64,000 nucleotides of DNA from Anthoceros angustus (taxonomy: Eukaryota; Plantae; Anthocerotophyta): assembly GCA_010909165.1 (NCBI GenBank), contig VJWM01000019.1:806001-870000 (forward strand), given 5' to 3'. Position numbers and translations under genes: made by a program. This document shows positions 27,518 to 64,000 of the stretch, piece after piece. The stretch's first letter is position 1. Each line of letters opens with the position of its first letter. A model generated the notes under the pieces. The model did not search any database, had not been told where the DNA came from, and saw nothing but the letters and a program-made list of their open reading frames with translations.

Positions 27518-27529
27518 ATAGTCTAAAAA

Positions 27530-31870: not shown

Positions 31871-32057
31871 TCAAGCACCATGGCCGAATGTGCACGAAAT
31901 GGAGATGTGGAGGAAAACAAGAGAAAAGCGGAGAGAAGGGGAGGGAAACGAATGAGATAGAAAGTAAAGGGTATTTGGTAAACAAAAAAGTAAAGTAGTA
32001 AGAAGTAAAAATATATTCACTATTTTACCTCACTGCAGCCAAATAATGGAGGATTTG

Positions 32058-39477: not shown

Positions 39478-39479
39478 AG

Positions 39480-40400: not shown

Positions 40401-41624
40401 GATGGCGAGTAGAGGTTCGAGTTCCGAAGTCGGGGAACATAGCTGGGCATACGAGGCGTGAGTGAGTTCTTCTCCACCTGGACTGCAACACGCACATCCC
40501 GGGATCGAGCCACTAACACAAACCTATGCCAATGAGTATGACGGGCGAAGACGAGACTCCGACGACTCAGCTATCGGCCAAAGAATACATACTTTGTGGG
40601 AGAGTGGCAAGGACTTTGCATTTGCTGGCGAGACGGAGGGGGCCACCGCTTGCCTTTCACTCTGTTTACGGGGATCAGGTACTCTTTGGAACTGTGAAAC
40701 ATCTTGATTTTGCCCGAAATCTTCGTCCGCTTCTTGACCCGACATCTACATTTTGTCAATGACATAGCAATCGTTGGTATCGGTCAAGGAATGAAAGGGC
40801 ACATAACACGAAACCCACATCGCCTGCGTCGGAGTGTGTGAACTGGAGCATTGTGTTGGACTCGTAGCTCAAGGTTACGACTGCGACAAGTGTGATAAAA
40901 GGTGGTGGTGTGTGGTACATGACTTGACCGCAGAGGAGGGGCCGTGGAGAGACAAATCACTTGATTGCCAAATCCTAAATAGATTTCAAGTAATGGAGGG
41001 CGGTGCTATTATGCTACTATCTGCTACCGCATATGCCGCTACCATAGAGTTAAAATGAATGGCCGGTAGCCATCAATAGCGGCCTGGAAAAAAGGGTATC
41101 CGAACGTTATGAAAACGCTTACTTACCCAATTGCATATTGGGCTTGCCCGCATGTATAAACAAACACGTAGTTACACACTACCTTGCAAATGATGTGCAA
41201 TCGACAATGCGAAGGACATCGCGAACGCGGTGTGTGGAACGTATGTTGGGTATGGGTTAAAAGAACATCGAACGCAGCACACATATTCGATCCTTGTTCC
41301 TCCATACATAGTCGATAAGGACAATAACTCGGACCTCGTTATAGCGTTGTTACGGATGGCGCGAAATTAGGGTTTCTGACTCCTTAGAAACCCGAACTAA
41401 GTCCTTCTTCTACGTCCGAGCCGCAGCGGCGTAACGCGAGCTCTTCCAACGCGGGCGTCTGCGATTCAAGCGAGGCCGCGTGGTTTTCCCAACAATTTGC
41501 CGACCGCCACCGACTCTCCATCCTTTCCAGAGGACGACAGTGAGAAATTCCTTGTCCGAAATAGAATTGGTGCTTGCCTAATCCGGATTGAGCGTGTTTG
41601 ATGCCTATCTTTGGTGCTACGACG

Positions 41625-44600
41625 ATGGCGGACGCGCAGAAGAAGGACCTCCCGGCGTGCCCTAACCGGAGACTTGTTGGAGAAGCCATGGAGGCGTAAG
41701 AAATCTAAAAGCAAGAAGGAGGCGAAATCGAGAACCACGGATCCTCCACGCGACATACCGATCTGGATATGCTTTCCAACCGCTTGAGCAAGGTGGAGGT
41801 GGAACGGAAGGGGCATAAAGTCCGGGTCACTCAATTCAAGGCAAGCACCACAAAGACGTTGGTGGTGGAGAGAAGTCCGGCTTGTCCAAAGGATTGAGGG
41901 TGGGAAATCCAGATCAATTCCTCCATACTGTATGAGGAGATCAGCTGGAGGCACATGAACCAGCTTGAGGACACTATGCTTCGCGAGAATGGTTGTTGAC
42001 ACAAACAGAGGAGCCGGATGAAGAAACATGCTATGGACGTGGCGTCAAGCTTTGGGTTTTGGGTTCAACGGTGCACCGCAAACCAGAGAGCAAGGGTGAT
42101 GGGTCCGTGGGCAACTTTGGATGGAGGCGCGAGACCCAATCATGATTCTGCACTTCAAGGCCTTATGAAGTGGACGCATTGCCGCATCGTCGATGATTAC
42201 ACTGTATCTCATGAAGTGGCATGTTTGCACAGGAAGAAATGTGAGCCAAAGGAGTTGTCCAGCACTTTTCGAGCAGCGTTCAGAGCTGAGAATGTGAGTA
42301 CACTTCTTAATTCCAGTGCATTCGCCATCATCGTTGATTGCATTGTTGCAGCCTAACGGTGTGCTTGCTGCCTGTGACGGACAGAGTGAGAGAACATTTT
42401 ACAGGTGCTTGTGTGAGGTGATTACGAGCTCCATTATCCGTCATCGCCGAGAGATGTCACTGAGGAGGACAAGACAGGGACTTTCAAAAATCGCACTGGA
42501 AGTAGAAGACAATGAGGCAGAGTTCGGACCTTCTGATGAGGAGGATGGGCCTATTCCAGAGTTGCTGGGTCATTCAGATGCGGAGGCATTTGAAGAGGAT
42601 GATGGGGAGGCCGAGGTGATGGAGGGAGGTTTGCAGCGCCACGGATTCCTTCCAAGGTCGTCGCCATCCAAGCACCATGGGAGGAGTCCACGTGCACATG
42701 GAAGAGGGGAGGCCGGGGGACGCAGATGCCGCGCCCGACTATGGTGAGGAGGAGGGGGGCGCAGATGCGGGCAGCACGTGATGGAGGAGCAGGGCGCCGC
42801 ATGCCGGCACTCAAGACGGAAGAGGCGCGCATGCCGCGCCCGACTATGGTGAGGAGCCGCGCGGGGCGCCGGCATGCCGGCGCCTCCCGAGAGGGGAGGA
42901 TGAAGGGCCGGCATGCCACGCCCTCTTGCATGTAGAGGAGGAGGGCGCCGCATGCCGCCGCCGCCACGGCGAGTGGAGGAGGTAGGCGCCGCATGCCGCG
43001 CCAGAAAACCTGTGGCTTGCTGACTAAGGCGCTGGGGCCATGAGAAGCGGAAAAGCATGCATGATGAGGAAGGTGGTGGGCACAGCAGGTCCCGGAGTGC
43101 GGAACGTTCGATAGGAACGAGCAGGAAAAAAGTTCGAAGCGTCCCAAGGGAAACTGACAACAATGAGATTCCAACATTGCATGTCTCAACAGATGGAGAA
43201 AGACTCGAAGCGTCTATGATGCATGAGGATTATTTGCAGAAAGTCAGGGAGTCTGCATATGCGAAGAAGGTGGTGCCGTAAAGCGATCAGAAGTCGAGAA
43301 TTTGAGGGCGCTTCGCTTTCTAACTCGTATGAGGAGAGGCTGCTGGAGGCACATGAACCAGAGGACACTATGCTTCGCGAGAATGGTTGTTGACACAAAG
43401 CGGAGGAGGATGAAGGCTGCTATGGGTCAAGCTTTGGGTTTTGGGTTCAACGGTGCACCGCAAACCAGAGAGCAAGGCGGGATGGGTCCTGTGGGCAACT
43501 TTGGATGGAGGGCAGCGAGACCCAGGCTGGATTCTTTGCACTTCAAGGCCTTATGAAGTGGACGCATTGCCGCATCGTCGGATGATTACACTGTGTCTGT
43601 TGAAAGTGGCATGTTTGCAGGAAGAAATGTGAGCCAAAGGAGTTGTCCAGCACTTTTCGAGCGTTGAGCTGAGAATGTGAGTACACTTCTTAATTCCGAG
43701 CATTCGCCACCGCGTTGATTGCATTGATGCGACAGCAATTAACTTCTTTTGATGGACAGTGAGAGAACATTTTACAGTGCTTGTGTGAGGTGATTACGAG
43801 CTCCATTATCCGTCATCGCCGAGAGATGTCACTGAGGAGGACAAGACAGGGACTTCCAAACTTCGCACTGGAAGTAGAAGACAATGAGGCAGAGTTCGGA
43901 CCTTCTGATGAGGAGGATGGGCCTATTCCAGAGTTGCTGGGTCATTCAGATGCGGAGGCATTTGAAGAGGATGATGGGGAGGCTGAGGGTGATGGAGGGA
44001 GGTTTGCTGCTGACGGATTCCTTCCAAGGTCGTCGCCATCCAAGCACCATGGGAGGAGTCCACATGCTACATGGAAGAGGGGAGGCCGGGGGGCGCATGC
44101 CGGCGCCCTCGATGGTGAGGAGGAAGAGGGGCGGCATGCGGAGCTGATGATGCGGAGGGGGGCGGCATGCGGCCCCTCTAAGGCGGAAGAGGCGCCGGCA
44201 TGCCGGCGCCTCCCGAGAGGGGAGGCGCCGGCATGCCGGCGCCTCCCGAGAGGATGAAGGCGCCGGCATGCCGCCCTCTTGCATGTAGAGGAGGAGGGGC
44301 GCGGCATGCCGCGCCCGACTATGGTGAGGAGGAGGTAGGCGCGTGCTGCAGCGCCAGGCCTGGGGCTTGCTTGGAGGAAGGCGTCGGGGATGAGAAGCGG
44401 AAAAGCATGCATGATGAGGAAGGTGGTGGGCAGCAGTCCCGGAGTGCGGAACGCGTTCGATAGGAGCAGCGGAAAAGTTCAAGCGTCCAAGGAACGACAA
44501 TGAGATTCCAACATTGCATGTCTCAACAGATGGAGAAAGACCGAAGCGTCTATGATGCATGAGGATTATTTGCGAAAGTCGTGAGTGCATATGCGAAGAA

Positions 44601-45065
44601 GGTGGTGCAAGCGATTCAGAAGGCGAGAATTTGAGGGCGCCGTTTCTAACTCCGGATGCTCGGGTTCGTCAAGTGGATGAGGCTTGGGCGAACTACCGCT
44701 CGGCCATCTCAAAGGGTCGTATTGAAGAAGGTGTGCCTTTGCTTTGTATGATTGACCCATCCGATCATAGGATATCAAAACATTAGACCGGAAAAGTTCC
44801 GCAAAGAAGTATATTATGGGGTACTGGAGGCAATCATACTTACGCCGCCATGGCAAATTTGCGGATATATCACCAGGGAAGGCAAGGTTCCAATGGATGG
44901 AGGCCCATGTCTATTGCGGCTAACTCTACGGGGAGATGCGAGTCGCAACCCACTACAACACAATGTCGGACAAGAGGAAAAAGATGAACTTTATCGAGCG
45001 GTCGAGCACTCGTGATGAACTTTGATTGCAAAGCGGGATGGTGTGACAATGAGCATGAACTGGAA
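41625..45065 (+). pseudogene. ParB-like/methyltransferase gene, copy 1, truncated by the duplication junction before the MTase domain
   Basis: ATG GCG GAC GCG CAG AAG AAG at 41625 after a spliced leader; GGNHTYAAM at 44826-44852 and EMRVATHYNTMSDKRKKMNFIER. Internal duplication approx 43320-44640. Confidence 0.55.
42700..43010. repeat. GC-rich minisatellite-like block (also approx 44080-44350 and approx 58890-59120)
   Basis: Repeated GCATGCCG(C)GCCC and GACTATGGTGAGGAG units. Confidence 0.7.
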
Positions 45066-48000
45066 TTTCTCATAAACTTAAGATCTGTGATGCAGGAAGT
45101 AGAGGTGGCAAAAATGGCTCCATTCGTCTAAAAATAATAGGAAATAGAGTGCCCCACCAAAAGACGCTATTGACATTGGGCCACATTATGTGTACATACC
45201 ACATCCAACAATCCGAGTGCCTTGGTTGGTTCAGGTCACTATAAGGCTTGGGCCATCTTCCCAATCGACAATCCTCGCAGAGCAGTAATCAATTTTAAAA
45301 TGATAGGATCCTTGTACAATTCGCTTATCATAATCCGTATATAGCTTGTGCTTGATGGCGAGACGTGCTGCAGAAAAGTCCGATCGACATCACTTTTTGC
45401 ATCGCTGAGAGGCCGTATGCATAATTAGTCAAACGTCAATTGATATAAGTCATTGTGTTACTCCTTCACCAAGGATAACCGAATGGTTGTTAATGGAAGT
45501 TACTATACACTGGGAGTAAAACATACCGCAGATCGTGGTCCATAACCAGCTTTCTCAACAATAACTTTTTCTTCATGCTTGGCACATGCAGTTACCAAGT
45601 AATGTGATATGTTTCCTCCTTTCATGGGAAAAACAACGCCACCATAGCCGCAATGGCCAATCCACTATCGTCCCAAGGAACACAAACCGACTAGTTGGTG
45701 CTAATTCATAAGTGGAGAATTTATCTCGGATACACAAATGTGATGTGTCGCCTTGAGTCCAAAAACCACATGTTAGTGTCGACTTGAGTGAGGGAAAGAC
45801 ATACCGCAAGAATGGTTGGCGGTTTGTGTCTTTGTTGTGTAGCAATAATCCGTCCTTTTGTCACCACATGTGTTTCTACTGGTGGTGCCTCTCTCGGTGG
45901 CTCTCAGCCCGCTTCTACGCACTCATTCTCAAAATGTCCGTGTACGACACCAATGACAGTGCCCTTCTTATTCGCCCGGTGCAAAGGAGGTTGATGCATG
46001 ATAGGGGCGTCCCTTCCCGCCCCTCTCCCACGCCCACACCGGGTATAGAGAACATGAGAAGTATGCACGACCACGTCTGTAGCAACTCACTGGATTCCTC
46101 CTCCAAAGAAAGCACCAACAACTTGAGAAAAGGTAACATAAGCACTTGCTTGGTTTGCAAAATTGTTTTGAGTGGTAACAAATGCTGTAGCTATGTGGCG
46201 TAGATGTAAGAAGAACTGTGATGGCCTTCGTCGTGACAAGACATCACCGATGCAAGCTTAGCACGAAGAGCTCGAAACTTGTGTAGGTGATTTTCAACAC
46301 TATCACTCTCCTTCATACTAAGGTCAGAGAGTTGTCAGTCGCGTTGATAAGCGACATTCCGCCTTTTGTGAACATGTCCTTAAACAATCGCTAAATGCTC
46401 GCAGACATGGTCGCCTTGTGTGTTGTATCATGTTTTTGTCGAGAGAGATAATAATGCAAAGATGCTCTCTTATCAAGCTTGATCCAAGCACAATTTCACG
46501 CATTTGTTCCTTTAGGACCGACAACGCTGGATTTGTAGCTTTACCACAACATCAAGGAGATCATATTCTTCAAAGATGGCCTCCATACGAAGCTCCCAAA
46601 TTGGGTAATCATCCCATTAAATCTGTCTTTATCTTTAATATCAATCTTAATTGTATTATTTACACTTGTGTTGGTGGGATTGCTAGTTCCATGAGTGAGG
46701 TTTTGGGAGGAGTGAAAATAGGGCTAAGTGTTATTGGGTACACTGTGTGGAGGTGACCACATACACCGTGTGGATAGGTGCCGTAAAACCCACCGACAAG
46801 ACTAGAGAATGGAGGACTCAGTCCCGACCAAACATCTTTGCTAAAGACCCTAAAATTTGCTTGGTTCAGTACTAGCATCAAACCGAAAGATGGATCACAA
46901 TGAGAAACATCACGGCTGGAGATGCTTGAACCGGATTTAGGGCCCAAAGAGTGAGAGAATTTTGTGAGTTGTTCTATTAGCAAGGTGGCTCGTGACAATT
47001 TTTGTTCAAAACACCTATTTGTTTCTCAGTAATTGTATTTGGTCCTTTTGTAAGTTTGTGTGTGATACGTGCTTGGTCTTTAAGTATTACTCGAAAATTT
47101 TAAGTGCTTAATTGCTATATGGTCCCGAGGATGTGAGATGTTGTGGTGGCAAAGGACTATGGGGAAGGAAAGGCTATTCTACTACATGCCGAGCAGAAAT
47201 ATTACAACGAGAAGGGCTGATGTTGAGAAAGTAGGTCTTGATCTCCACGTAATCTATTTCTATTTCGATTCCCTGCTTCATGGTGTCGATCCACTTATCG
47301 CCCCGCGCCTTTGGTTGCGCCTCCCATCTCCGTGGCCGGTGATTGCTTGAACAGATCAAGATGAAGTCTCTTTTCCTCCTCCTCGCTAGGGAATGTCTGG
47401 GTGGTACCGCCCACATCTGGGCACAATGCGCAACATCCTCCATGCCGCAATTCTCAAGAGAAAAAAGATGTAATTGTGGCCTCCAAGGATCTAATGCGTG
47501 AGATGAGTGTCATCAAGAAACGCCTAGGGTTAGGATTGCTGTCAATAGGAGATGATGAATTCTTCCATGTTGATGGTGCGATCCCATGCCATAGGGAATA
47601 CGAACACGCTCCATTAGGGCTCGATACCATAATGTGTTTACGATCGCTAGCCTGTGCTAGGAGCACCACGAGCAGGAGAGCACACATCTATAGTGCAACA
47701 TAGATTAACATCGCTTAGGGTTCAAAATACATATATCGAAAAGGTGTGAGTGAGTAACCGCTTTTCTAAACCTAATTCCTAATAAGCGTTATATAATTAA
47801 TAGTTATGAGTTAGCCAGAAAACTAAACATTACTCCAACATTCTATATTAGTGAGATTGAAGAGGGATCGTTTCTTCCTTTTGCTAACCAAGAGAACTTT
47901 CCTGGCAAGCAACTTCGTGAGTTCTAGGTTGTATGGAAAGCAATACTATACCCTCCATGATGAGACAGAGGTGATAGAAGCTTTAGTAGGCGCCATAAAA

Positions 48001-51000
48001 TTTGTAAACACAAGTTTTAGAAGAAGAGACGATGTAGTCATGATGTATTCTTTTACGTGATCATTCATCGCAAGATATTGTACAAGATATGAATGCTCCT
48101 AGCGATGGTAACAACACCATAGAAAGACATAGGAAGATACTGATTTGGTTGTTGCTAGAGGTATGTTTCCTCGCACTCATTGTTGTAATCAAGGAGTTTT
48201 GGCAAGAGTTCAAGGAGTATTGGACACCCACTTCATCTTAAGTGTCTTGAAATTCTTCCTATGGAAGCCTCTACTTCCAAACATGTCAACAAGGCGGGCT
48301 ACCTCTACTTTAAACTCGCAATCCTTCCCCTGCTTGTCAACAATGTTCAGCCTTTGCTTCCTCCAATTTAGAATCACACAATGCTAACAATTCTTCATGT
48401 GTCCATGGAGTGGTCGCTTCACTTAACGCGGTGCTGAGTCTTTTGCTTGAGCTATGCGACTGGCCTCAAGCCATGGCCGAATGTGCGAAATGGAGATGTG
48501 GAGGAAAACAAGAGAAAAGCGGAGAGAAGGGGAGGAAACGAATGAGATAGAAAGTAAAGGGTATTTGGTAAACAAAAAGTAAAGTAGTAAGAAGTAAAAA
48601 TATATTCACTATTTTACCTCACTGCAGTGAAATAATGGAGGATTTGTAGATAGTTTAGTTCACAAATCAGTTCAATCTAAACTAAAATACACCTCGACAT
48701 CAGCCAACTACATGCTATATCGGATTGTGTCTGTGTTCTAGTTCATGTAGTTCAAATGCGCGATAGTTTAGTTCACTAATTAGCTCGATCTAAACTAAAC
48801 TACACCTCGCCACATCAACGAACTACATGCCACATCGGATTGTGTCTGTGTTCATGTAGTTCAAATCCGCCATGTGGCAAACTAGGAGCTGAAATGCAAT
48901 TCAATTACATTTGAATGGCAAGTGCGGAGAGGTCTTTAAAAAGCGTAGCATCGCATTGCACCCAATATTTTGAAACTCACACAAACACTAAATATTACTA
49001 TTCTATGAAATAATGATGAATATTACTACTCTAAGAAGCTTATAGAAATAGTAATTTCCTCATTGGATTGTTTTGTGGTATAAATAAAAGCCTAGTTGTA
49101 CTGAAACATAATATATGAAGACACGAAACCGGGCAAAATTCTCTATCCGCTTGAACTTTTTATAGATTTAAAGTCGTGAACTTCTCATCAACTTAGAAAT
49201 TAGGTCAAAGGGACTTCTTTGTAGGCTAAAACATCAAACTTAGGGAATTTCTCTATCGGCTCATAAATTTGACATATTTTCTATCTCAGATGAGAGATCA
49301 TTCCACGTCATGTGGAAAACTTCTCTATTGGTTTAGAAATTGGGCGACGCTCTCTCTCTATCGATCGAGGAGATTGATGCACGACATGTGGAACATAGGG
49401 TGAGACCACATCCGCATCGTTGGATAGAATATTATGAATTGATTTTTAAATCGGAATTTACAAATATTAGCACATTCGACTTATTCAATTATGTTTGACT
49501 TATAAATGTTATACACATACAATATGATTTTGTGACTTGGTTTGAATTTATATTTTGATTGATATTAAACCAAGGAACCATCATCAATTATCACTAATAT
49601 ATATAAAAGAGTCTCCGACACGCCCATTTTGCATCGTAAATTTAGGTGTTTTGAGTAAAGCGGATAAGATGCCTAAAAGAAAGAGAATCATGAAAGATTC
49701 AAGCTCAACATCTAATTTGAACCCCCTATAGGGCACACATGCGGGCAATATAAAAATGCAAAAGCGGTCACCAATATTCAAGAAGATAAAACACCGAACA
49801 CCGTGTATGTAATGAATGCGGCTTGATATTAGAGAACCGTTACATCGACACCACAAGAAACTAAGGGCATCCGCCAATGATAACTTTTTTCCCTCACAAA
49901 GTCCTAGACATAGTTAATGAATATATTGAAGAAGCCAAAAGATTGGATTTGAAAACAAACATCCAAGATTTGGCATTGCCTTTTTTCAAAAGCTGGTGGA
50001 TTTGGAAAAGGGAAATTTTCAAGAGCTGGTATGCGCTTTGGGTTGCTAGCAAATGGAAAGAACTCCCAAACGCTGAGATTAGTTATGCTACGAGAAGTAT
50101 GGGTATCGAAAAAGAGGTTGTTGAACGGTTGGGAAAGAACTTGAACGATTCTTCCTATTAGAGGCTAATAGACATATTAATGCAGCTGCTGAAAAATTGG
50201 AATTGAGTTCCCTCTCCAAGACTTGGCATTGCATTTTTTAGGAGATTGGTCGATTTGAAAAGGGAACTTTGCTAGAGGGTGCAAGCGGCTTTGTAATCGT
50301 AGCAAAGATGGAAAGGATTTCAAAGACTGGAAATTAGGCATGGTACTTGTGTAGGAATACATGAGGAGGTTATTTTACGGTTGGCAAATGACTTGGAACA
50401 ATTCTTACGTGAGAAAGATGCAAAGTTGAAGGCTGAGAAAGATCGAGAGGCAGCTGAAAAAAGTCCTAGATATGGCTTGGAAACATATCAAGGCAGCTGG
50501 TGAAAAGATGCAATTGAGGCCCACTTGTCCAAGATTATCGTTCTATTGTTTCCAGAGATCCATGGATTTGAAATTTAAGAGAGAAATAAATTTTGAAGAG
50601 CCACAAAGATAGCTCACGTAGCTAGTAACTGAGAGGGACTCATCGTCGTTGGGACACAATTAATTACTATGTAAGTCCAGGAATCAAATAATACAGCTTG
50701 GTAAACAACAATCAATTCTTCTAGATATAGAATATCAAAATTCAACATGTATTAAGTAGATAATGAGTTCGCTTGTACTGTATCCATTGCCCTCTAGTGG
50801 GCACTCACTCGAGCGATCCTTCACAAGGCAACACTAGCGGTGATGCATCTTCCTCTTCACCAAGAGTATGCAAGTCGTTTATTTTTCCGATATAAAATTG
50901 TTGTGCAGGGTGACTTACGTAGGGGAGAGTCGCTCCTTTTTTCGTGAAAATAAGGGTTTCCTTTGTTGTTCTTTGCTAGATGGGCTTCCCTCATTTTTTC

Positions 51001-53384
51001 TCTCAATAAAGTTTTATGGTACCTGTGAGATATGGTGCAAGCATGGTTTGGTGCTCACATTAGTGAGAAAGCAGATAAACATTGTTATTTTGTCCTCATG
51101 TAACGTTAATAATTTCAACTAATTTATTTCTTCTCTAAATTGTCTGATTTTTTTTACAAGATATACAAATATATCACTTCTACATAAAATTAAAATACTC
51201 ATAAAAATATTCAAAATGAAAGTCTAAATTTAGAGACTACTTGGGACGGGCATTGTCTCACTCAACGGGCACTTGTCACACTATATTTACGAAGTGGGCC
51301 CGAGAACAGGCAGGTAGGCGGGCACTCAGGCCCTTACCTAAATCATTTTGTAGCATGTTTACGAGATGAGCAAACAGATCGTCGGCGTTTAACTCAACAA
51401 ATTTTGAGTTGTCACGCTACTGCCGCACTCGATTTAGGGTTGTCATCGATCTCTTCTCGGAGAAGAGGTCACGCCACACCATCACAACTGCGAGGAAGAT
51501 CTCGACTCATCGGCAGAGTAGAAAAACATAATATTTGAAGCGGCTGAATATACATGAAGCGGCTGCAGGGGTCTATATACGTGGATCCGGGTTTAAGATG
51601 GTTATCAAAACGGCATGTTTGGGATTAGGCGAAAGCGTAAAATAAGGGTGAACATCACCGTCAGTTGTGCCAACTACGCCTGAAAAACGCGGTGCTCTCC
51701 GGCTTATCATGCGCCACGAGAAAAGTACCCATGTTCTCTCCCCTCATTGCGGGAAAAAAGCTGGTCGTTCGAGTTTCCGGTGGCTTGTGTTGCAATCATT
51801 GTGGCCAAGAACAGGAAATCACTGCATTTAAAATCACATGGAGACACATGGAGACAACTATGGTATGGGTTTTGTAGAGGTTGTCATATCACCAAAATGG
51901 CGCGGCGATTGTTGGGTGTATGGCGCCGCAGATGCGCGCCTTTTGCCGTGGCTCTGACAAGCATGAAGCGGATGTGTCTCTGTTATACGATGGCGGAAAC
52001 GAACACGATGGGAGCATATGGCGCCTAGAGGGTGGAAAGTGGAGCACAAGCGCCCATGTCCGCCGTCACGGTTCGCTATAACGGCAAATGTTATGACTAG
52101 TGCAATTGTGTAATCATGAAATGTATTGCGCTAGTACATGCCAAAACATGGTAGACGCTACAAGGTGACATTTAAGATGTACTCATCGGCATGGTGGTCT
52201 GCATGTCTTAAAAACAATGTATGACAAGAACATGAAACTTATGCCGACAACTCGTGTCCGACTTTCAAACCCTATGCCATGAAGAGAAATTAGGGATAAA
52301 CATAAGGTTCCCTTGTTATTTGTTGCTTAGCACATGTCATTACTCTTACGAATCGAGACCCTCGTCCCGTCCACACAGGCCTCATCTCCATCTTCATCAC
52401 TCTCCATTGCCTCATCCAAGTGTTTGGTTGAATGTGAGGACGAGCGCACTCAACTTTTCCTTTATAGCTTTCTCCGCTGCATGATGTTTCGAAGTGAGTG
52501 AAACCCGTAGTATATAATAATGGTTTTTCGACAAAACCTTTTGGATGTTGGGGCCCTTTGCACTTTCCCCGACCTTTTTGGCGGTGGTCCATTGTCTTTC
52601 CTTTGAAAAATTCTCCAACATACTTGCCTCATAAGCATCCGTGTGCTCGATTCGCCACTGCACAAGCAACACGGTGGGCCCCAAGGTGCACACTTACAAC
52701 CTTCGCTACCAACGCCCTATTGTGTGTGTCACAATAAACATTCCTTTCTAGATCTCCATAATATCGCCATCCATCCTTCTTGCCACCTCTTCTTGGCGTT
52801 CAATAGTTTGGTAGGCCCCTAGATACATGTCCTGTGTGGTCACGCAAAGAGCCTCCAAGACTTCTTCCGGTATGTGCAAAGGGGACTCGGGCTCACAGCC
52901 CTATCGTACCATCTCCGTGGGTTTTGTAGAGGTTGTCATATCGGTGAAATGTATGCTGGCGATTGTTGGGTGTGGCATGGCGGCATCTGCGGCGTCTTTG
53001 AGGGCTCTGACGATGAAGCAGCGGATATGTATACGTATTATCTGATGGCGGAAACGAACACGATGGGAGCATATGGCGTCTAGAGGGTGGAAAGTGGAGC
53101 ACAAGCGATCCATGTCCGTCACCATTCTTATCTATAACGGCAAATGTTATGACTAGTGCAATTGTGTAATCATGAAATGTATTGCGCGTGTATTCGATGC
53201 CAAAACATGGTAGGCGCTACAAGGTGACATTTAAGATGTACTCATCGGCATGGTGGTCTGCATGTCTTAAAAACAATGTATGACAAGAACATGAAACTTA
53301 TGCACAACTCGGTGTCCGACTTTCAAACCCTATGCCATGAAGAGAAATTAGGGATAAACATAAGGTTCCCTTGTTATTTATTGC

Positions 53385-56300
53385 TTAGCACATGTCATTA
53401 CTCTTACGAATCGAGACCCTCGTCCCGTCCACCTCATCTCCATCTTCATCACTCTCCATTGCCTCATCCAAGTGTTTGGTTGAATGTGAGGACGGCGCAC
53501 TCAACTTTTCCTTTATAGCTTTCTTATCTGCTGTGATGTTTCGAAGTGAGTGAAACCCGTAGTATATAATAATGGTTTTTCGCACAAAACCTTTTGGATG
53601 TTGGGGCCCTTTGCACTTTCCGACCTTTTTGGCGGGTGGTCCATTGTCTTTATCCTTTGAAAAATTCTCCAACATACTTGCCTCATAAGCATCCGTGTGC
53701 TGGCACCGTGCACAAGCAAAACGGTTCGATGGCCCCAAGGTGCACACTTACAACCTTCGCTACCAGGCTATGTGTGTGTGTCACAATAAACATTCCTTTC
53801 TGTATCTCCATAATATCGCCATCCATCCTTCTTGCCACCTCTTCTTGGCGTTCAATAGTTTGGTAGGCCCCTAGATACATGTCCCTGTGGTATGTCACGC
53901 AAAGAGCCTCGTCGATCTGACTTCTTCCGGTATGTGCAAAGGGGGATCGGGCTTGACGCCCTATTACCATCTCCGGGGTTTTGCAGAACAAGCCCAATGT
54001 TATGATCCACAATATTTGCGATTTCGTGTTGATCATTCCAGAAATCCATCCACCATTCTTCCTCCACAGTAGTCAAATATGTTGGTAGCTTCACCAGTCC
54101 TTTTTTCAAGTGATCCACGCCTTCACGTGCGGTCAAACCCCCATCACTAGCTTTCTTGTCCTTCGCCCGCAATGCCATCAAAGGAGCGGGCCCGATGACG
54201 GTGTCTGGAACAAAAATCAAGTCGAGCCCATCTTGATTCCCACAAGGGGAAGTGGAGTATTGCTTACGAATAACGGTAACCTTTCCCGCCCAACTTTGTC
54301 CTCGCGGTGATTTTGAACTGGTGCTGAAATGAAAGGTTGTTCAACTTCAACCGCAGTGATATACTTCCCCCGCTCACTAACGTAATGGCCATACGTATGT
54401 CCGGAAGTCAGCCACCGTCAACACTTTCACCTGGATTCGGCGTGAACGAGGACTTCAATATGTCCTCCATAGTTGGCAATGTCCGCCTCCTTATGTTTTA
54501 AATGCTTAGAAAACATGAAAACATTTGATCCACTTGGTCGTGCGTATGCCCCACGAGGAGGAATCCAACCTTCACCTTCTCGAACGTCCCGAGTTCAACG
54601 AGCATGTTCAAGCACGCAAAATAGAAGCTGGTTCTTGTTCTCTCGGCATGTATTGTCCAGCTGCAGGTATAAGACTTTGGGAAGTATCCCTTCATACGTG
54701 TGTATAACGTCCTGGATAATAGTTATTGTTAAATTTGCATCATTCCTGAGATTGGCATAATGCAGATACGCCCGCGCTCTGAACGTGTAATTATGTATCA
54801 TGCATCCAACAACATGCACTGTGATCCGACTATCCTCCTTCAAGTCCTTTGGCCACCGCAAAATATGCGGCAGAAGTTTTTTCGTCCATGCCGATAGATA
54901 ACAACATATATTTCTGCGGCTCCTTGTAATGACGATGTCTTAACTTCTTCCGTTCCTCCATCAATCGTATCCGATGCTTGTTGAGTGCCTCTTGATACAT
55001 AGTCGTATGTCATGGAACACCATTGTCGACTTGTGGGCACGAAATTCAATAACTTTGCATACAGAGCTATTTGGGAAGATCGAGTGTCGTGCATTGAAAC
55101 CGAGATCGAAACTAGGACATACGATATTGCTGCCTATTATTCCACCCAAATGCATAGTGAGCATAACTGACAGCCTCTGCAGAAGTTAATGTTACGGCAA
55201 GAACCCAACCCATGCATTTCGACTAGAGGCCGCCAACATGCCCCTCCATGGAGTGAACCTTATAAGTAGCTTGGAGGGCGCGGCATGCTGCACACCGGTG
55301 CAAAGAGGCGGCGCAAGCTTCCTCATCAGCACAACAAAGCACCCGTAGTTCACCGCGCTTTAGGGCCTTGGGCGCCGCCATGCCCTATCGTGCACTCCAC
55401 ATTTGGGGCGCGGCATGCGCGCCTCGAGGAGTGCATGGCGCCGCCATGGCCGCCTCTCCGACAACGCCGCCTCATTCGCCATTCGGTGCAAGGCCATCCG
55501 AGCCCTCCACGGCAAAAACGGGCGCCGCACGACATCCCTTTGTCACTTGGAGGGCGCCGCCATGCGAGTACCCTTCACCACAGACAATATGGTGCCGCCA
55601 TGCCGGCTCCTTTTTCTGTGCGGTGGAGGGCTCCGGCACTGCGCCGTACAAAGCAACGTGTCGGGCGCCGGCACGGCGACTCCTGAGACATCACCGCCGC
55701 CGCACCGGCAGTACCCGCAGTGGCCCGTACATCCGCTGCTAACTCCCTCCATTACTCCACATGCTTTTATGCCATGCATACAGACAGACCGCAATAGCTG
55801 GGGAGGAGGCCTACCTTGGTCAACTCCGATCGGTGTCGTATGTTGAACTTCAGCCCGATATGGAACAAGTCGAGAACTGTTTGACTTGGGTATCTTCACC
55901 CGCTTGAAATTGACCCACACCGCAAGAAATATGCATACGACACAAAAGCGCTCACCTTTTGACTCCATTCCACTCTGATTGTATCCAAACCTCATGCTTC
56001 GTGAAAGTGTCGTAGATTGTATACCTCCACATTCGGCGTCGCTCGGCCAAGTGAAGGAAAGTCGCATCCATCCGTGCAATTGCAGCCAAAGCATGGGAGG
56101 ATTGTACACGAGGGCTGGCCTTATTAGCGTCCCATGGTGCGTTGAATAACCCTCCGCTTCAACTCCTCGTACCTTGCGGACCTATGATATACGCCGTCAA
56201 GGCTTTCAAACAACATTGCATAGGAATCGACCCATGAGGTGAGTGAAAACCTGTCCCTTGTTGTGGCCTCGCAAATGGCATTGAAATGTCTCTTGTCCGC

Positions 56301-56989
56301 CCATTCTCGAAACGCATCTGCTCATGAAAAGCTTCTTTTGTGAACTTGCGGATGCACAATTTGTTGCAACAAGGCTTTGAAATCCTCTCCCACGGAATCG
56401 CCTTCACTTTTCCTCAAAGACACCACCGCGCTCGCACACGGAAGCCCACATCGCTAATGAAAGGTACCAAAGGCTTGGATGGAAAGTGACGGCAGATCGG
56501 CCCGTCCAAACTTCTCAATGGGGTGTCGAAGACATTGTCCTCATCTGCATTAGGCGTCCCGCATCTTTGGAAATAGTAGTGAACAATCCCGCACTCGCCC
56601 ACCGCACCGACACCAACTTTCCTCCTTCCAGACGGGCTTCTATCTATGGCGAGTAGAGGTTCGTGTTCGAAGTCGGGGAACATAGCTGGGCACGAGGCGT
56701 GAGTGAGTTCTTCTCCACCCCGGACCCGCAACACGCATCCCGGGATCGAGCCACTAACACAAACCTATGCCAATGAGTATGACGGGCGAAGACGAGCCGA
56801 CGACTCAGCGGCCAAAGAATACATACTTTGTGGCGAGAGTGGCAAGGACTTTGCATTTGCTCGGCGAGACGGAGGGCCAGCGCGCTTGCCTTCACTCTTA
56901 CGGGATCGTGTACTCTTGAACTGAAACATCTTGATTTTGCCCGAAATCTTCGTCCGCTTCTTGCAGACATCTACATTTGTCAATGACAT
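53385..56989 (-). pseudogene. DDD/E-type DNA transposase (copy 2)
   Basis: LYLQLDNTCRENKNQLLF, VELGTFEKVKVGFLLVGHTHDQVDQMFS and CCNKLCIRKF; 3' tail duplicated at approx 52290-52910. Confidence 0.75.
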
Positions 56990-57821
56990 AGCAATCGTTG
57001 GTATCGGTCAAGGAATGAAAGGGCACATAACACGAAACCCACATCGCGTCTTGAGTGTGTGAACTGGAGCATTGTGTTGGACTCGTAGCTCAAGGTTACG
57101 ACGGCTACCGCGACAAGTGTGATAAAAGGTGGTGGTGTGTGGTACATGACTTGACCGCAGAGGGTGGGAAGCCGTGGAGAGACAAATCACTTGATTGCCA
57201 AATCCTAAATAGATTTCAAGTAATGGAGGGGCGGTGCTATTATGCTACTATGCCAGCATATGCCTACCATAGATTAAAATGAATGGCGAGCCATCAATAG
57301 CGGCTGGAAAAAGGGTATCCGAACGTTATGAAAACGCTTTACTTACCCAATTGCATATTGGGCTTGCCCGCATGCGTAGATAAACAAACACGTAGTTCAA
57401 CACTACCTTGCAATGATGCAATCGACGCGAAGGACATCGCGAACGCGGGTGTGGAACGTATGTTGGGTATGGGTTAAAAGAACATCAAAACAGATATATT
57501 CCGTCCTTGTTCCTCCATACATAGTCGATAAGGACAATAACTCGGACCTCGTTACGTTGTGGACGCGAAATTAGGGTTTCTGACTCCTTATAAACCCGAA
57601 CGAATTGAGTCCTTCTACACGTCAGCCGCAAACGGCGAACGCGAGCTCTTCCAACGCGGAGCTCGATTCAAGCGAGGCGCGTGGTTTTCCCAACAAGTCA
57701 CCCTCGCCACCCAGCTCTCCATCCTTTCGGAGGACGACAGTGAGAAATTCCTTGTCGAAATAGAATTGGTGCTTGCCTAATCCGGATTGAGCGTGTTTGA
57801 TGCCTATCTGGTGCTACAGAC

Positions 57822-60800
57822 GGCGAGCGGACGCTGAGAAGAAGGACCTCCCGGCGTGTGGCCTAACCACGGAGACTTGTTGGAGAAGCCGGAGGCGAAG
57901 AAATCTAAAAGCAAGAAGGAGGCAAATCGAGAACCAGATCCTCCACGCCAGACACTACCGCCTCGGCTGGACATGCTTTCCAACCATTGAGCAAGGTGGA
58001 GGTGGAACGGAAGCATAAAGTCTCACTCAATTCAACAAGGCAAGCACCACAAAGACGTTGGTGGTGGAGAGAAGTCCGCTTGTCCAAAGGATTGAGGGTG
58101 GGAAATCCAGATCAATTCCCTCCCATACTCGTATGAGGAGACTGTGCGGAGGCACATGAACCATTTGAGGACACTATGCTTCCAGCAGAATGGTTGTTGA
58201 CACAAAGAGGAGATGAAGAAACTGCTATGGACGCCGGCGTCAAGCTTTGGGTTTTGGGTTCAACGGTGCACCGCAAACCGAGAGGCGGGATGGGTCCTGT
58301 GGGCAACTTTGGATGGAGGGCAGCGAGACCCGTAATCATGGATTCTTTGCACTTCAAGGCCTTATGAAGTGGACGCATTGCCGATCCGATGATTACACTG
58401 TATCTCAAAAAGTGGCATGTTTGCACAGGAAGAAATGTGAGCCAAAGGAGTTGTCCAGCACTTTTCGAGCGCGGAGCTGAGAATGTGAGTACACTTCTTA
58501 ATTCCGCATTCGCCACACGTTGATTGCATTGATGCCTAACTGTGCTTGCACCGTGATGTGAGTGAGAGAACATTTTATGTGTGCTTGTGTGAGGTGATTA
58601 CGAGCTCCATTATCCGTCATCGAGAGAGATGTCACCGAGGAGGACAAGACAGGGACTTCAAACGACCGGAAGTAGAAGACAATGAGGCGAGTTCGGACCT
58701 TCCGATGAGGAGGATGGGCCTATTCCGAGTTCTGGTCATTCGGGATGCGGAGGCATTTGAAGAGGATGATGGGGAGGCCGAGGGTGATGGAGGGAGGTTT
58801 CGCTGGGGCCACGATTCCTTCCAAGGTCGCCGCCATCCAAGCACCATGGGAGGAGTCCCTGCTACATGGAAGAGGGGAGGCGAGGGGACGCGATGCCGGC
58901 GCCTCGACTATGGTGAGGAGGAGGGCGCGCCCTGTGCGGATGAGGAGGGGCGCGCCGCTCTGACGGAAGAGGGGCGCCGGCATGCCTCCGCCGAGGAGGA
59001 AGAGGGGGCGCCGCCCCGGTTTGAGCGGAGGGGCGCCGCCGCCCTCCCGAGGAGGAGGGCGCTGCCGCCCTGTGCAGAGAGGAGGCGCCATGCGCCGCCC
59101 GACGCGAGTGGAGGAGGTAGGCGCAGATGCGCCTCAGAAACCTGTGGCTTGCTGAGGAAGGCTGGGGCCATGAGAAGCGGAAAAGCATGCATGATGAGGA
59201 AGGTGGTAGCAGTCCCGAGTGCGGAACGCTCGATAGGAACGAGCAGAAAAAGTTCAAGCGCCCCAAGGGAAATCGATAACAATGAGATTCCAACATTGCA
59301 TGTCTCAACAGATGGAGAAAGACCGAAGCGTCTATGATGCATGAGGATTATTTTAAGTGAGTCGCATATGCGAAGAAGGTGGTGCGTAAAGACTAAAGTC
59401 GAGAATTTGAGGGCGTTTCTAACCCGGATGCTCGTTCCAAGTGGATGAGGCTTGGGCGAACTACCGCTCGCCATCTCAAGGGTCGTATTGAAGAAGGTGT
59501 GCTGCCTTTGCTTTGTATGATTGACCCATCCGATGCAGGATATCAAAACATTAGACCGGAAAAAGTTCCGCAAAGAAGTATATTATGGGGTACTGGAGGC
59601 AATCATACTTACGCCGCCATGAAGCGCCTTGCGATATATCACCGTGGAAGGCAAGGTTCCAATGGATGGAGGCCCATGTCTATTGGGCTAACTCTACAGA
59701 GATGCGAGTTCGCAACCCACACAACACAATGTCGGACAAGAGGAAAAAGATGAACTTTATCGAGCGAGATACCTGTGGATGAACTTGATTGCAAAGCGGG
59801 ATGGTGTGACAATGAGCATGAACTGGAAGTTCAATTTATACAAGGTGCTTAATGATAGAGGATGACGAAGGTCGGGAAGATGAGCAATACAAGCAAAACA
59901 AAGTGGACAACCGGACACATATACTATGCATAGCAAACTGGAGGGAAAGGTGTGGGAAAACGTGATGATCTTCACCAAGTGGGAGGCGATGGAACTTCCC
60001 GAAAGGTGCCAAACAGCAGTACTAGCAAGAAGAGCAAGGGCAAACGCAGTTGGAGAAGAGGTGAAGACTGGAAAGCGTTTTGTTAAGCCCAAAGAGATGC
60101 AAGGAAACCATGGCAGCTTTCCAAGGAATTCCACCGAGAGACGGTCGAAAATGCTGATTAGTGTGGAAAAGGTTTTGACAGTTTAGGACTCGAATGGTAT
60201 GTCCAAGGAGGTGATATCGGAAGAAACTTCATGTCATCCAAGTGGCGATGGCGAAACACTTAGGATGTGACTCTTCGAGATGGTTAGCGAATACCCAATG
60301 CACTCTTCGGATGATGTTATTGCACGTTTCAAACAGCGTTCGATGGAAAGGTACGTGTCATTTGTTTTAAGACTCATTGAGTAGACGCCGCGCCGCCTCT
60401 CCCACCATTTCCTTCGTTGGTTGTAACAGTAGGGAAGCATGCCGCGCCGCCCACTACCTATTGTCACTTAATCGGTTTTCGATCGACCACGGTGACGCGG
60501 CACAAGTGAAAGATGTGCGGATTTGAAAAACTACGAGGACTTCCGTGCTTTCACCGGAAGTGCACACATGGAAGGGTCCGGAGAACGAACAAAGGACCCT
60601 AGCGACATGGACATGGAAGAAGGCTGCTGCTCACTGCTCCAACCACGAGTGTATCGTGAAATACCAAGTGGTAGCGAGAGATGTGTTGGACATCCGAGGG
60701 TTTTACTAAGAGGAATTACACTTTATTGGTTATGGATGTGCCTGGGATTCAACAAGGAAAGCATGATGTAAAGATGGACCAAACACGATGGGCATGTTTC

Positions 60801-61581
60801 ACTCTTTCCATGACATGACGAGTTGTGAGGAAATGCATGATAGTTATGCATGGGGTGGAGGCCGCACATCGTGAGGGAGGCTGCATGCTGGTGCACCGTG
60901 GAGGGATGGTCTCCTCGTATGGGACAAAACTAACATGCATAATGATCAAGGTGGATATGATACCGCCGAGTACATCACGGTAGGGTGGGGGTAACTACAG
61001 AAGAAGAACAAGGTTTCAATGTTACCTAACACCGCCCTTGGCTGCTCAATAATGGTCGCATTGGGCACAACATCGTCAAGAAGCTTCTTTATATGTCATT
61101 GGACAAGCTCGTATGTGCTTATCGAGGCCATTAGGGTTGATGCGTAAGATGATCAACAACTTCTCCAAAGAAGGAGATTGGATATTAGATGCGCATGCGG
61201 TGAAGTGACGACGACCTAGCAAATACGCTATGTGGCCGCAATTGCATCGCCGTGACTTGGACAAACGATGCGGAATTCATTCCCCAAAGGATACATGGAT
61301 ATGAGGTACTTCAGCCGAGGAGGAATTGAATCATGAGCCACACCGACGAGGACCCGCCAGGCAAAGGAATTAAGCTTGTCCGAGAAGGGTCACTGCAAGC
61401 ACAGTCGTACCTTTGGGGTTCAACAGATGAAAGAGAAAACGGGCAAATCTTGATGACGGGCAGAACTCGAGCGCAGTGCCATCCAGACTACAACACCCAA
61501 AGCGCCCTCCTCGCCTCTTGGATGTGGAGAATGCCATGTGAGAACGACAACTTCGAGGACCCCGACAACGCCTCCTCGTAA
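57822..61581 (+). pseudogene. ParB/Srx-like domain fused to a beta-class N4C/N6A DNA methyltransferase (full-length copy, frameshifted in this sequence)
   Basis: GGNHTYAAMKRL (59595-59630); YQVVARDVLDI..KRNYTLLVMDVPG (60660-60746); LLVWDKTN...AEYITVGW (60911-60990); RPLGLMRKMINNFSKEGDWILDA (61125-61193); CG..TTT / LAN.LCGRNCIAV (61196-61254); acidic tail to TAA 61581. Confidence 0.72.
60660..61265 (+). other. N6_N4 amino-methyltransferase catalytic domain (motif IV before motif I, beta permutation)
   Basis: Catalytic D-V-P-[Y missing]-G precedes the SAM-binding ILD.C.G.GTT..A...GR.CIAV, with the typical W.K and KP.L...I...S..GD.+LD elements. Confidence 0.8.
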
Positions 61582-62178
61582 ACGCCGATGTTGTGTTCGA
61601 TAGCGATTCGGGCAATGCCCACCCGAGACTCAAGCCGGGCGAAGATTTTGGTAGTTAGGTTATTGGAAATTTACGCTCTGCTATGTGTCCAAATTTTAGA
61701 AATTTTTCCAGTATGACGATGCCTACGCAAACATTCCCTTTAATCTTTATATTGCTTTTAGTGCTATGTATTGCTTTCAAGTAGGTGTGAAATCACGACA
61801 AGCAACCGTCAATATCACCATGGAAGACCATTGGGGCCTTTCGGGCATACTACGACCATAACTGCAGTGCACTTGTGAAAAGTAGCCGATGTCAGAGGAA
61901 GGGAGGAATGAACCATCACCAAGAAAATTAAAACGTCAAATGGGAATTCAAAGGCTCACCATGTTTTCCAAATAGCTTGGTTTTTTCCGCAGGTTGTTTT
62001 GTATATTCACCGCCTAAATATTATGCCAGTTGTAGGCTTATCTTGAGGTCTGGCTGGACAGGGAGTATGTAGCATGAGAACTGGAACCAGATTTGTGGAG
62101 CGCAGGTTAGATTGCCTAGATCTGCGGCATGTTTGATAAACTTTTTTTTTTGGACTGAGCTCACTATGGTGGGTATAT

Positions 62179-62293
62179 GTGGCAGGGGAGTGGTGGATTG
62201 AGGTGGCAGGGACGTGTTGGGTACGGGTGGCAAGGGGTGGCAAGGGAGTGGTGGATTGAGGTGGCAGGGAAGTGGTAGGCAGAGGTGGCAGGG
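62179..62293. repeat. Short minisatellite, six GTGGCA(G/A)GGG cores
   Basis: GAGTGGTGGATTGAGGTGGCAGGGA appears twice. Confidence 0.8.
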
Positions 62294-63115
62294 TATGCAG
62301 TTGGGTTTAGGTGGTCCTTGGTTCATTGTATTTCTAATCGCTGGTTCTTGATGGCTTTCATGGAACTCCCGAGGGAACCGCTGGATATGCACGGTGGTGG
62401 AGTATCGAAGATCACCTTGTAGGATCACACGATCACAGCAGCCTGACACCTACAACCGGATCCGTGGAGGTGCGAGCTGCGACCGAGGGATCAAGCTTTA
62501 GGGTTGTGCTCGGTTCTTTGGCTCGCTGTGGCAGGTACAAAGTTGGAGTCTAACAAATAGCTATGCTTTTGTTTAGGTGGTGCATGTAGCGTATGGCTTA
62601 TTACCATCACCGCCAAATGGAGCCAAGGGCTAAGTAAACGTCGACAAAGAAGAACGCCAGCCTGTGCCCAGTACATAAGTCAAGCATCTTCTAGTGAAGC
62701 TGGTGTTCAAGAGTTGTCGGGAAGGAGACTAACAAGGAAACTTGGTATTCCTCAAGTGCAGAGGTCAAACGAGGGGACCCATGCAGCACGAGAGGAAGGT
62801 GGAGCAGAAGAGGATGCCACTACTGTGCAAGAAACTCAGGTGCCCAAACTTTAACCGTCTGCATGAAGTTTAGAGAGCGCGTAGCTATGGGTCATTGCTT
62901 CGGTGTTAAGGAATGCTTGACGTCAGCAAGGTGATGTGGCTCGCAAATTAGGTCATCGCTTTCTAGAGCTTACAAGTGGATACACAGCAGAATGTCGTCA
63001 AGACATTATGGAGAAGTTTAGTAACCTACCATTGCTGAAGATGTTTTGACCAAGAGCTCGACAGGATGCCAAAGACAGCCAATTGGGAGCATTGTTGTTG
63101 AAGAATGTGCGTGAG

Positions 63116-64000
63116 TGTGGCGCGACTTTCGCTGACGGCCAGCCGGGCGCGCACAATTCCGTGTCGTTGTAGTAAGGAGTCCGTTCCCAAGAGAATGATA
63201 AGCTCCGCTGCTTCACCGATTCTCACCTTACTTTCCCGCTCAACTTTAACACACGCAATCGCTGCTTTGCGCCTAACTACTCATAACGCTCACCGAACAG
63301 CCCGTGTGGCCAAACGCTTAAGGACCCGCTTGTCAGATCGCTCACGCACGCCACTCTCCCTTTAGTCCGCTCTCATCACCTCACTACGCCATCAACCTTG
63401 GAAAAGAACGCAAGTGGCTACGCCCCGACCTCCTCCGTTGCTCAACCGGCCTCCGTCCGGCTCAGACGCCTCCCGAGTTCCTCCGCTCACACGCCCGGCC
63501 CGCTGACGCCGCCTGACGAACACGGGTCCCCGCCGCCTTCCCCGCACACACCACCACACGTTAGGGTCCGCTACTGTGACCTTGACGCCTCTCCGAGCTG
63601 CCGGCTCGCCATGACTCAGACTCACGTTAGCATGAAGACACACAAGGTCTGCAAGAAACGCGATCAACACCAAGAGAAGATGATTTATTCAGCCCTCAGC
63701 CTCTTATACTACGCCCAAGTCGGCGCTTTATTACACTCCTATTCGAGGGTGGCTACCAAGACGCCCTAATCGGCCGCCTACCATCCTATTCCTCCTCCTA
63801 TCTCCTTCGCTTGGTGGGCCTGGAAGGTCCTCGCCTCTTGGTGGTCCAATCTCCGTCCCGATAGCTGCGACCCAATCGGATGATCCGCGAGGCGGGACCC
63901 TTCCTCTTCCCGAATCCCGTGTACACGGGCGGCCCTGACGACCGCCACACACAACGCTCCCCCGCCCCCGAGGTCCCTCCTGTGAGGGGCCACCGACCGA
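63116..64000. mobile_element. Left end of a second member of the 4129-12671 family (runs off the right edge)
   Basis: Begins TGTGGCGCGACTTTCGCTGACGGCCAGCCGGGCGCGCACAAT, colinear with 4129-approx 5050 but clearly diverged; preceded by GTGAG (candidate TSD). Confidence 0.88.

Follow-up and report, generated by a model that had tools for sequence, protein, structure and literature searches.

A stretch of 64,000 nucleotides from Anthoceros angustus (assembly GCA_010909165.1, contig VJWM01000019.1, positions 806,001 to 870,000 of the forward strand) was analysed at its full length; it is referred to as the window, and all positions below are counted from its first letter. Two genes lie head-to-head near its right-hand end: a Sola1/DUF7869 transposase gene on the minus strand (53690–56413), and a plus-strand gene (59.45–61.32 kb) in which a ParB-like region is followed by motifs of a beta-class amino-methyltransferase. 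Arrays of GC-rich palindromes occupy the space that separates these two genes and also occur within their 5′ parts. A portion of the locus occurs twice, as self-comparison revealed a second representation of 45064–59832, placed head-to-tail at 27528–45069.

Opposed transposase and ParB-like/methyltransferase genes

The interval of 53.3–62.0 kb contains no long open reading frame (ORF) on either strand, and stop-to-stop translation gave pieces of 40–265 codons in changing frames. The transposase gene was read in several frames by using Pfam, tblastn to two relatives described below (L006 and L009), and the motifs of the Sola1-1_Ec32 transposase of Ectocarpus. Two adjoining minus-strand pieces matched DUF7869 (54598–54939, E 4.6e-19; 54501–54722, E 3.3e-14), which bears out the DDD-type transposase that had been proposed for this strand from the letters alone, in what we call the sequence-only reading. 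These pieces carry LDNTCRENKN and GHTHDQVDQMFS exactly as given there. A third motif of that reading, IDGMDQ, was found intact in the second representation (37.2 kb) only, and the interval for which it had been noted has SIGMDEK across a frameshift. When compared by eye, in an unscored alignment, the window motifs (I)DGMDQ, LDNTCRENKN and VGHTHDQVDQMFSCF matched MDGANQ, VDNTVAENKN and VGHTHIQIDQIFSCF of the curated Sola1-1_Ec32 transposase, whose published sequence has the equivalent core MDGANQ, VDNTVAENKN and MVGHTHIQIDQIFSCF. Outside the catalytic DDD core that matches DUF7869 (54500–55010), an N-terminal Cys-rich block (CCNKLC, 56162–56413), a conserved N-terminal domain (55800–56160), and the C-terminal blocks WW..F.N and DMYLGAY (53690–54340) were recognised against the relatives. 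A GC-rich insert or intron at 55200–55780 holds a cluster of the half-palindrome GGGCGCCGCCATGC; in L009 the corresponding stretch is limited to about 60 nt. The 3′ end of the gene is taken into a two-copy tandem repeat with a period of about 1055 bp (51866–53987), which is not in the other representation. Judged from the DUF7869 matches and its motifs, the product is an RNase-H-like DDD transposase with the Sola1 core, and it is assigned to the Sola1 superfamily on that ground.

Relatives of the element were sought with the DUF7869 piece alone, the methyltransferase being unused, which gave 27 protein fragments, and the contigs of five of them were examined. L009, a contig with 36% GC, comes from an ENA metagenome assembly, and the source of L006 and L008 is a JGI metagenome, so that two unrelated samples are represented. 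In all three, a multi-exon ParB-like/methyltransferase gene is located head-to-head with the transposase, and L005 is an internally deleted relative in which both ends were kept, with the transposase still present and the methyltransferase gene reduced to its 3′ end. The ParB-like exon of the relatives reads YYV(L/I)GGNH...HN.D.EYRM.MTFIQR and the next exon QYQ.IQGDCEDI...ALVIADIPHGF; further exons of L009 hold QKP..L...LI..FSNEGDWVLDLFSGSG and GKNCIAIE, and introns are present, for example after GSG in L009. The last-but-one exon of L009 exceeded the cut-off of PF01555 (E 5.6e-8, 33.4 bits), and the methyltransferase exon of this contig also matched 37 phage methyltransferase genes at E ~3e-3. 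The transposase gene of L009 opens with approximately 15 tandem 87-bp units (7378–8640 of that contig) that encode an acidic repeat (PLSPNPMDYESSSDEEHDE.FQKNGVS), to which there is no counterpart in the window copy.

The plus-strand gene of the window shows the same layout. Its motifs run in the order GGNHTYAAM, HVY..HNT..MNFIER, DVLD, LLVMDVPG, RPLGLMRKMINNFSKEGDWILD and GRNCIAV, so that every plus-strand motif of the sequence-only reading was recovered, and their positions agree with its claim that a ParB-like region precedes the beta-class amino-methyltransferase motifs. The ParB-like region (59450–59780) reads LLCMIDPSD ... GGNHTYAAMKRL ... HVYWAN ... HNTMSDKRKKMNFIER and matches the corresponding exons of L006, L008 and L009 weakly, in colinear order (E 0.007–1.6). 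It is followed by a linker block, GTSERCADLKNYEDF (60499–60576), which matches GTSKTCLDIKN-PDD of the relatives in the family alignment (E 0.22, colinear). The N-terminal half of the methyltransferase (60650–60790), traced by BLASTP, the family hidden Markov model (HMM) and hhalign, runs from YQVVARDVLDI through a frameshift at about 60704 into KRNYTLLVMDVPGIQ, the motif IV region. The C-terminal half (61101–61320), traced by PF01555, tblastn and a three-frame view, comprises RPLGLMRKMINNFSKEGDWILD, motif I spread over two frame changes (ACGEVTTT), and LANTLCGRNCIAV...FIPQRI. Motif IV, the target-recognition region and motif I thus follow in the order of a beta-class enzyme, colinear with L009. 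The gene had also been described as spliced and as lying 0.9 kb from the transposase, and neither statement was confirmed. The frame changes, at about 59625, 59770, 60704, 61195 and 61215, fall between abutting or overlapping pieces with no space for an intron; the visible gene of about 1.87 kb for ~530 residues aligned to L009 leaves at most ~280 nt for introns, and about 3 kb (56.4 to 59.45 kb) lie between the conserved blocks of one gene and those of the other.

Individual matches of this gene are faint. PF01555 was touched only by 61053–61205, at profile positions 165–189 (E 1.4e-3, 19.1 bits vs. a cut-off of 26.7 bits). With tblastn against L009, the motif I region gave E 7.6e-4 and the C-terminal GRNCIAV block E 0.41, and the motif IV region matched L006 by BLASTP at E 3e-4. 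A tblastx comparison of the window with the five relatives (L005–L009) yielded nothing beyond the transposase core and a single methyltransferase match of 30 residues, and a PDB sequence search with the window methyltransferase piece returned nothing relevant. A tblastn search of this piece against phages gave no single significant match, and 11 of the 15 rows listed lay in genes annotated as methylase or methyltransferase, the other four being hypothetical proteins. An E-value of 3.5e-6 against a profile of three phages was not counted, since it is circular: the phage genes had been picked by their similarity to the window piece. The window pieces align with the exons of the relatives in equal order and on the equal strand, and their colinear-chain score against the L009 gene was the top of 99 window segments (z 3.1). 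Furthermore, positions 45–62 and 67–81 of an HMM of the N-terminal methyltransferase half land on two adjoining pieces of the window. Because of these colinear exon matches, the chain score, the HMM positions and the annotations of the phage rows, the plus-strand gene is accepted, by sequence comparison, as a diverged member of the ParB-like/methyltransferase family.

The palindrome arrays were counted in both representations. The array of the GGCGCCGGCATGCCGGCGCC type upstream of the ParB-like region (58700–59150) is degraded here, and the other representation shows it far more clearly (42795–43000 and 44091–44313). Its half-site GGGCGCCGCCATGC, allowing up to 2 mismatches, gave 17 matches vs. 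0.55 expected, all within the element, which were located at 38.0, 42.9 and 44.1–44.3 kb in one version and at 55.37–55.60 and 58.8–59.0 kb in the other. The full 22-bp palindrome AGGCGCCGGCATGCCGGCGCCT occurs in two perfect copies and in four at up to 3 mismatches (0 expected), and GCATGC cores with GC-rich flanks number 20 vs. 1.6 expected, being spaced by 30–43 bp in arrays of six or seven. There are two clusters, one upstream of the ParB-like region and one in the GC-rich insert (~580 bp) of the transposase gene. L009, a distant relative from an AT-rich genome (36% GC in the contig), carries another GC-rich array at the same position between its two genes, made up of long imperfect palindromes that differ from those of the window. 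Such lineage-specific arrays beside a ParB-like gene suggest binding sites of a parS-like kind.

We consider it probable, at about 75%, that the locus represents one copy of a Sola1-superfamily cut-and-paste transposon carrying palindrome arrays and a head-to-head gene for a ParB-like protein joined to a phage-type beta-class amino-methyltransferase fold. The two-gene DNA transposon of the sequence-only reading is upheld by the recurrence of the accessory gene opposite the transposase at independent loci, namely the window, L009, L006, L008 (plus the deleted L005) and a published element discussed below. The results that weigh against this reading concern the element ends, the ParB-like assignment, catalysis, and the frame and expression of the gene; they are given with the alternatives on which they bear.

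Element ends, domain assignment and catalytic motifs

Sola1 elements are delimited by terminal inverted repeats (TIRs) with a 4-bp target-site duplication (TSD), and neither was found in the window or the relatives at several sensitivities. For the window, the left flank (30.4–36.5, 47.9–54.0 or 1–30.4 kb) was compared with the right flank (61.3–63.15 kb), and no inverted repeat between them rose above chance. Termini that enclose both genes are thus presumptive; noise, truncation or the adjoining Copia insertion may conceal the element ends. If the two genes were chance neighbours, or the methyltransferase gene were a host gene beside a transposon remnant, this want of common termini would be expected. 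Such an explanation is nevertheless largely refuted and very improbable, as L006, L008 and L009, which stem from two unrelated samples, have the same head-to-head pair, as does the family published for Ectocarpus, and the palindrome motif is present on both gene sides. Short-read contigs of one DNA run also indicated a multi-copy depth over the methyltransferase region (58.2–61.8 kb). This depth stops at about 61.64–61.8 kb, which is probably the right end of the element.

Sequence methods gave the ParB-like assignment no significant backing. Pfam gave no ParB match for the window piece or the exon of the relatives, a PDB profile search with the family ParB-like profile returned nothing, and phmmer with the window piece found 0 matches in 1.84 billion representative proteins. 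An AlphaFold model of the L009 exon, built on a 15-sequence alignment, had a predicted local distance difference test (pLDDT) value of 39 and was set aside as unusable. The arginine motif of ParB_N (PF02195), G-x-x-R / H-R, is absent, the family having GGNH-S/T/F instead of the H-R pair; the residue expected at this position is that generally known for ParB proteins. With the family HMM, the ParB-like pieces of both representations ranked 2 and 3 of 2015 ORFs (E ~1). The structural neighbours of the L009 exon in the ESM Atlas were mostly ParB_N clusters (TM 0.52–0.61), and they included a viral cluster annotated 100% as N6_N4_Mtase and 98% as ParB_N. These model-based neighbours are a lead, which agrees with how the Ectocarpus protein has been described in print. 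The nearest named clusters for the L009 exon (3589–4290 of that contig), ahead of the ParB_N clusters, were fungal DUF3723, at a score of 0.96 with 178 of 256 protein-language-model features in common. DUF3723 genes are recurrent cargo of the fungal Starship giant transposons. As a lead, ParB-like accessory proteins may be a theme common to large eukaryotic transposons.

Catalysis was judged from motifs IV and I. The position of motif IV is occupied by D-I-P-H-G-F in 18 exon copies of the relatives, D-I-P-P-G-Y in L006 and D-V-P-G-I-Q in the window; none of these is DPPY, and the window sequence departs from (D/N/S)-P-P-(Y/F/W). When the family was aligned with phage methylases by hhalign, D-I-P-H was set on D-P-P-Y (E 1e-3, probability 22%). 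By sequence, the whole family has a non-canonical catalytic motif, D-I/V-P-x-G-F/Y. The SAM-binding motif I is canonical in L009 (DLFSGSG; EGDWVLDLFSGSG), and that of the window is legible as ILDA..ACGEVTTT..LANTLCGRNCIAV only via two frame changes within 40 nt, where indels are unreliable, so that a clean FxGxG does not appear. Relative to the family, motifs I and IV of the window look further degraded or mis-assembled. The missing aromatic residue, suspected at the outset to be an error, is accordingly in part a family trait, the second proline being replaced and the aromatic shifted, and in part specific to this copy. Because motif IV is not DPPY and the window motif I is not clean, catalysis is doubtful.

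These motifs also bear on an alternative in which the element is as described, but its methyltransferase-like protein no longer methylates; the protein would serve as a ParB-like factor for DNA binding, tethering or regulation on the palindromes, and the degenerate fold would act as a scaffold or reader. This would explain why motif IV is off the consensus family-wide, from the 18-copy sequence through L006 to the window, and why, in the relatives, no part except the C-terminal, SAM-binding half attains the Pfam threshold. We consider a loss of methylation rather unlikely, as the SAM-binding motif of L009 remains canonical and the D, the P and a nearby aromatic of motif IV are kept in many copies, which suggests active-site constraint; the alignment of DIPH on DPPY points in the same direction.

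Repeated segment and sequence accuracy

The head-to-tail repeat starts in a Copia integrase and finishes inside the ParB-like/methyltransferase gene. Half a Copia element is contained in the second representation together with the transposase and the ParB-like region, and the methyltransferase half is missing from it. This representation arose through an assembly artefact or else through a tandem segmental duplication, and it is no independent insertion; the copy at 34.4–45.1 kb had been considered as an insertion supporting the linkage of the two genes, and it was rejected since it repeats the same 17.5 kb including half of the Copia element. The Copia long terminal repeat (LTR) retrotransposon lies at 24076–31391 on the minus strand with gag (DUF4219, zf-CCHC), an integrase and a 532-aa RVT_2 ORF, LTR pieces being located at 24076–24298 and at 30118–30332 / 31041–31256, and the repeat junction is located within this integrase. 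For the Copia reverse transcriptase (RT), the nearest clusters are Streptophyta, a lead that fits the plant host.

Taken as accurate, the sequence would record a real 17.5-kb tandem segmental duplication followed by heavy decay, which left a dead, frameshifted copy. Such a history is doubtful in view of how the two versions differ. They show 29–62 substitutions per kb with a transition fraction of 0.34–0.59, and 27–51 indel events per kb, mostly of 1–2 bases. All other repeat pairs of 85–95% identity in the window have a like profile (transition fraction ~0.45, indel:substitution ~1:1), whereas two old pairs of 70–72% identity look normal, having a transition fraction of 0.61–0.64 and three to nine substitutions per indel. 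The window contains 13 exact two-copy head-to-tail repeats in 64 kb at 84–95% identity, and several are private to one version, which is difficult to reconcile with a duplication followed by decay. Twelve of them are smaller pairs, for instance 39112–40407/40402–41630, 41930–43326/43327–44652, 51866–52930/52918–53987 and 13397–14676/14668–15907. Differences within these repeats are indel-dominated (13–51 indel events per kb, transition fraction ~0.45), and the repeats resemble overlaps that were left un-collapsed, or gaps filled with raw long reads, rather than a biological feature. The short-read contigs, taken from the one DNA run with the stretch, also speak against decay, as they differ from the window mainly by small indels (114 indel and 62 substitution places; over 161 nt of one 172-nt contig, 8 gap letters and no substitution were counted). 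Of the sampled 31-mers, only 10% were found in the best DNA run. Moreover, the disruptions of the transposase core are not common to both versions, IDGMDQ being intact in one version and another motif, GHTHDQVDQ, intact in the other.

Three observations favour a real duplication and a dead copy. The frameshift at about 59625 is common to both representations, so that some damage may be real, and the Copia RT frame is intact over 553 codons, from which the sequence quality is uneven and the noise not window-wide. In addition, no RNA run was listed as containing the stretch, and nothing matched in the one RNA run that was compared; the first and last of these also count against the transposon reading given above. 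The common frame change (59615–59635) is the sole gene disruption present in both representations and falls within an ATATAT run, and slippage by 2 bases at this place would bring back the 21 residues by which GGNH and the HVY block are spaced in the relatives. The change may be a genuine mutation, or else a systematic error in a dinucleotide repeat; the second frame change of the ParB-like region is near 59770.

On balance, much of the window is likely to be poorly corrected long-read sequence with un-collapsed overlaps. Frameshifts had been taken as proof of a pseudogene, and this argument was withdrawn after the comparisons of mutation spectrum and short reads. Since discrepancies of 1–2 bases dominate, frameshifts are unreliable, and the copy can therefore be called neither dead nor intact from this assembly. 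More generally, calls of a dead copy based on frameshifts are unsafe here, as small indels are too frequent.

Related systems, possible role and flanking repeats

The sequence-only reading had not recognised the combination of genes as a described family. It was published in 2025 for a brown alga: Dinatale et al. (Genome Biol 2025, PMC12477816) described Sola1-1_Ec32, a 21.5-kb element of Ectocarpus in which a gene for a ParB-like protein with an N4C/N6A methyltransferase lies opposite the transposase. They propose there that the accessory protein binds and modifies its own transposon. According to the supplement (PMC12477816), this element has AACCG/CGGTT termini, a 282-bp imperfect TIR and a 4-bp TSD, and its best blastp match in Repbase is Sola1-1_PPa. 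The window element resembles it in being large, in the transposase core motifs, and in the opposite-strand ParB-like/methyltransferase gene, the accessory genes being likened by description. The hosts differ, a brown alga vs. a plant, and the defined TIRs, termini and 4-bp TSDs of Sola1-1_Ec32 stand against none found in the window. The accessory protein is 1104 aa long in Sola1-1_Ec32, compared with ~620 codons visible here. The suffix PPa in the Repbase name we take to be Physcomitrella patens; Sola1 would therefore already be catalogued in a land plant. Palindrome arrays are present in the window, and the text on Sola1-1_Ec32 that was consulted (PMC12477816) does not mention them.

Iyer et al. 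(2015, PMC4738411) traced several clades of eukaryotic amino-methyltransferases to phage ParB-terminase loci and reported ParB-fused methylases in chlorophytes and chytrids. The gene studied here shares with the ParB_N + N6_N4_Mtase fusions of phages and plasmids the order of a ParB-like region followed by a beta-class amino-methyltransferase, and the L009 exon matches phage genes. It differs from those fusions in being eukaryotic and transposon-borne, with introns in the relatives (L009), in having DIPHGF instead of DPPY at motif IV, and in a ParB-like region too divergent for Pfam. MpDN4MT1a/b of Marchantia, a land plant, and N4CMT of bdelloid rotifers are likewise beta-class prokaryote-type amino-methyltransferases in eukaryotic nuclei; compared by description, they differ in being host genes with demonstrated N4-methylcytosine (4mC) activity. 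The preprint on Marchantia 4mC mentions neither a ParB domain nor a transposon origin (bioRxiv 10.1101/2021.02.12.428880). A DNA-base-modifying enzyme is also cargo of another eukaryotic DNA transposon family, the KDZ transposons of fungi, which reportedly carry TET/JBP genes (Iyer et al. 2014, as cited by Dinatale et al.). Their transposase belongs to a different superfamily, and their chemistry is oxidation of 5-methylcytosine (5mC) rather than amino-methylation.

In the role we envisage, the ParB-like part would bind the palindromes of the element as a parS-like site, and through this binding the methyltransferase would stay tethered to the transposon itself, whose DNA could then be marked with 4mC or N6-methyladenine (6mA). 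Self-targeted marking of this kind is put forward tentatively, at somewhat less than even odds. One possible effect would be to keep host 5mC silencing off the common CpG-rich promoter region. Alternatively, marking might couple transposition to replication. In bacteria, amino-methylation by Dam gates the expression of the IS10/Tn10 and Tn5 transposases and the use of their ends after replication. Dam is, however, a host methylase acting at GATC sites, and its likeness to the window element is a functional analogy only. The fullest version of this proposal is speculative and unlikely to hold as a whole: in a land-plant Sola1 element, a ParB-tethered methyltransferase with the derived D-I/V-P-x-G-F/Y site would write 4mC or 6mA on lineage-specific palindrome arrays in the bidirectional promoter region of the element, thereby shielding the element from 5mC silencing or timing its transposition, and it may also be a source of the amino-methyltransferase genes kept by plant hosts.

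Among eukaryotes, transposons rarely carry a DNA-modifying enzyme of their own. Such elements could explain the sporadic reports of 4mC and 6mA in eukaryotes, and they could be where host enzymes, for example the 4mC methyltransferases of Marchantia, came from. With this locus, the pairing, until now published for algae, gains a plant host. The locus also adds palindrome arrays, which two distant family members have in the same place and which are a candidate binding or target site, and a conserved non-canonical catalytic motif.

The flanks of the window contain further repeats. Just beyond the place where the element presumably ends on the right, 62168–62307 is occupied by a minisatellite with units of 24/58 bp (GGTGGCAGGGAAGTGG...), and a different, very abundant repeat begins at 63.0 kb. 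On the far left, Copia-type Pol_BBD, gag_pre-integrs and rve domains (3210–4148) lie upstream of a GC-rich (60–63%) tandem array with units of ~0.9–1.9 kb (4100–11540). A relative of this array with 72% identity was located at 63116–63916, where the short-read contig depth is up to ~1700; the repeat shared by both places is an abundant satellite-like or high-copy repeat.

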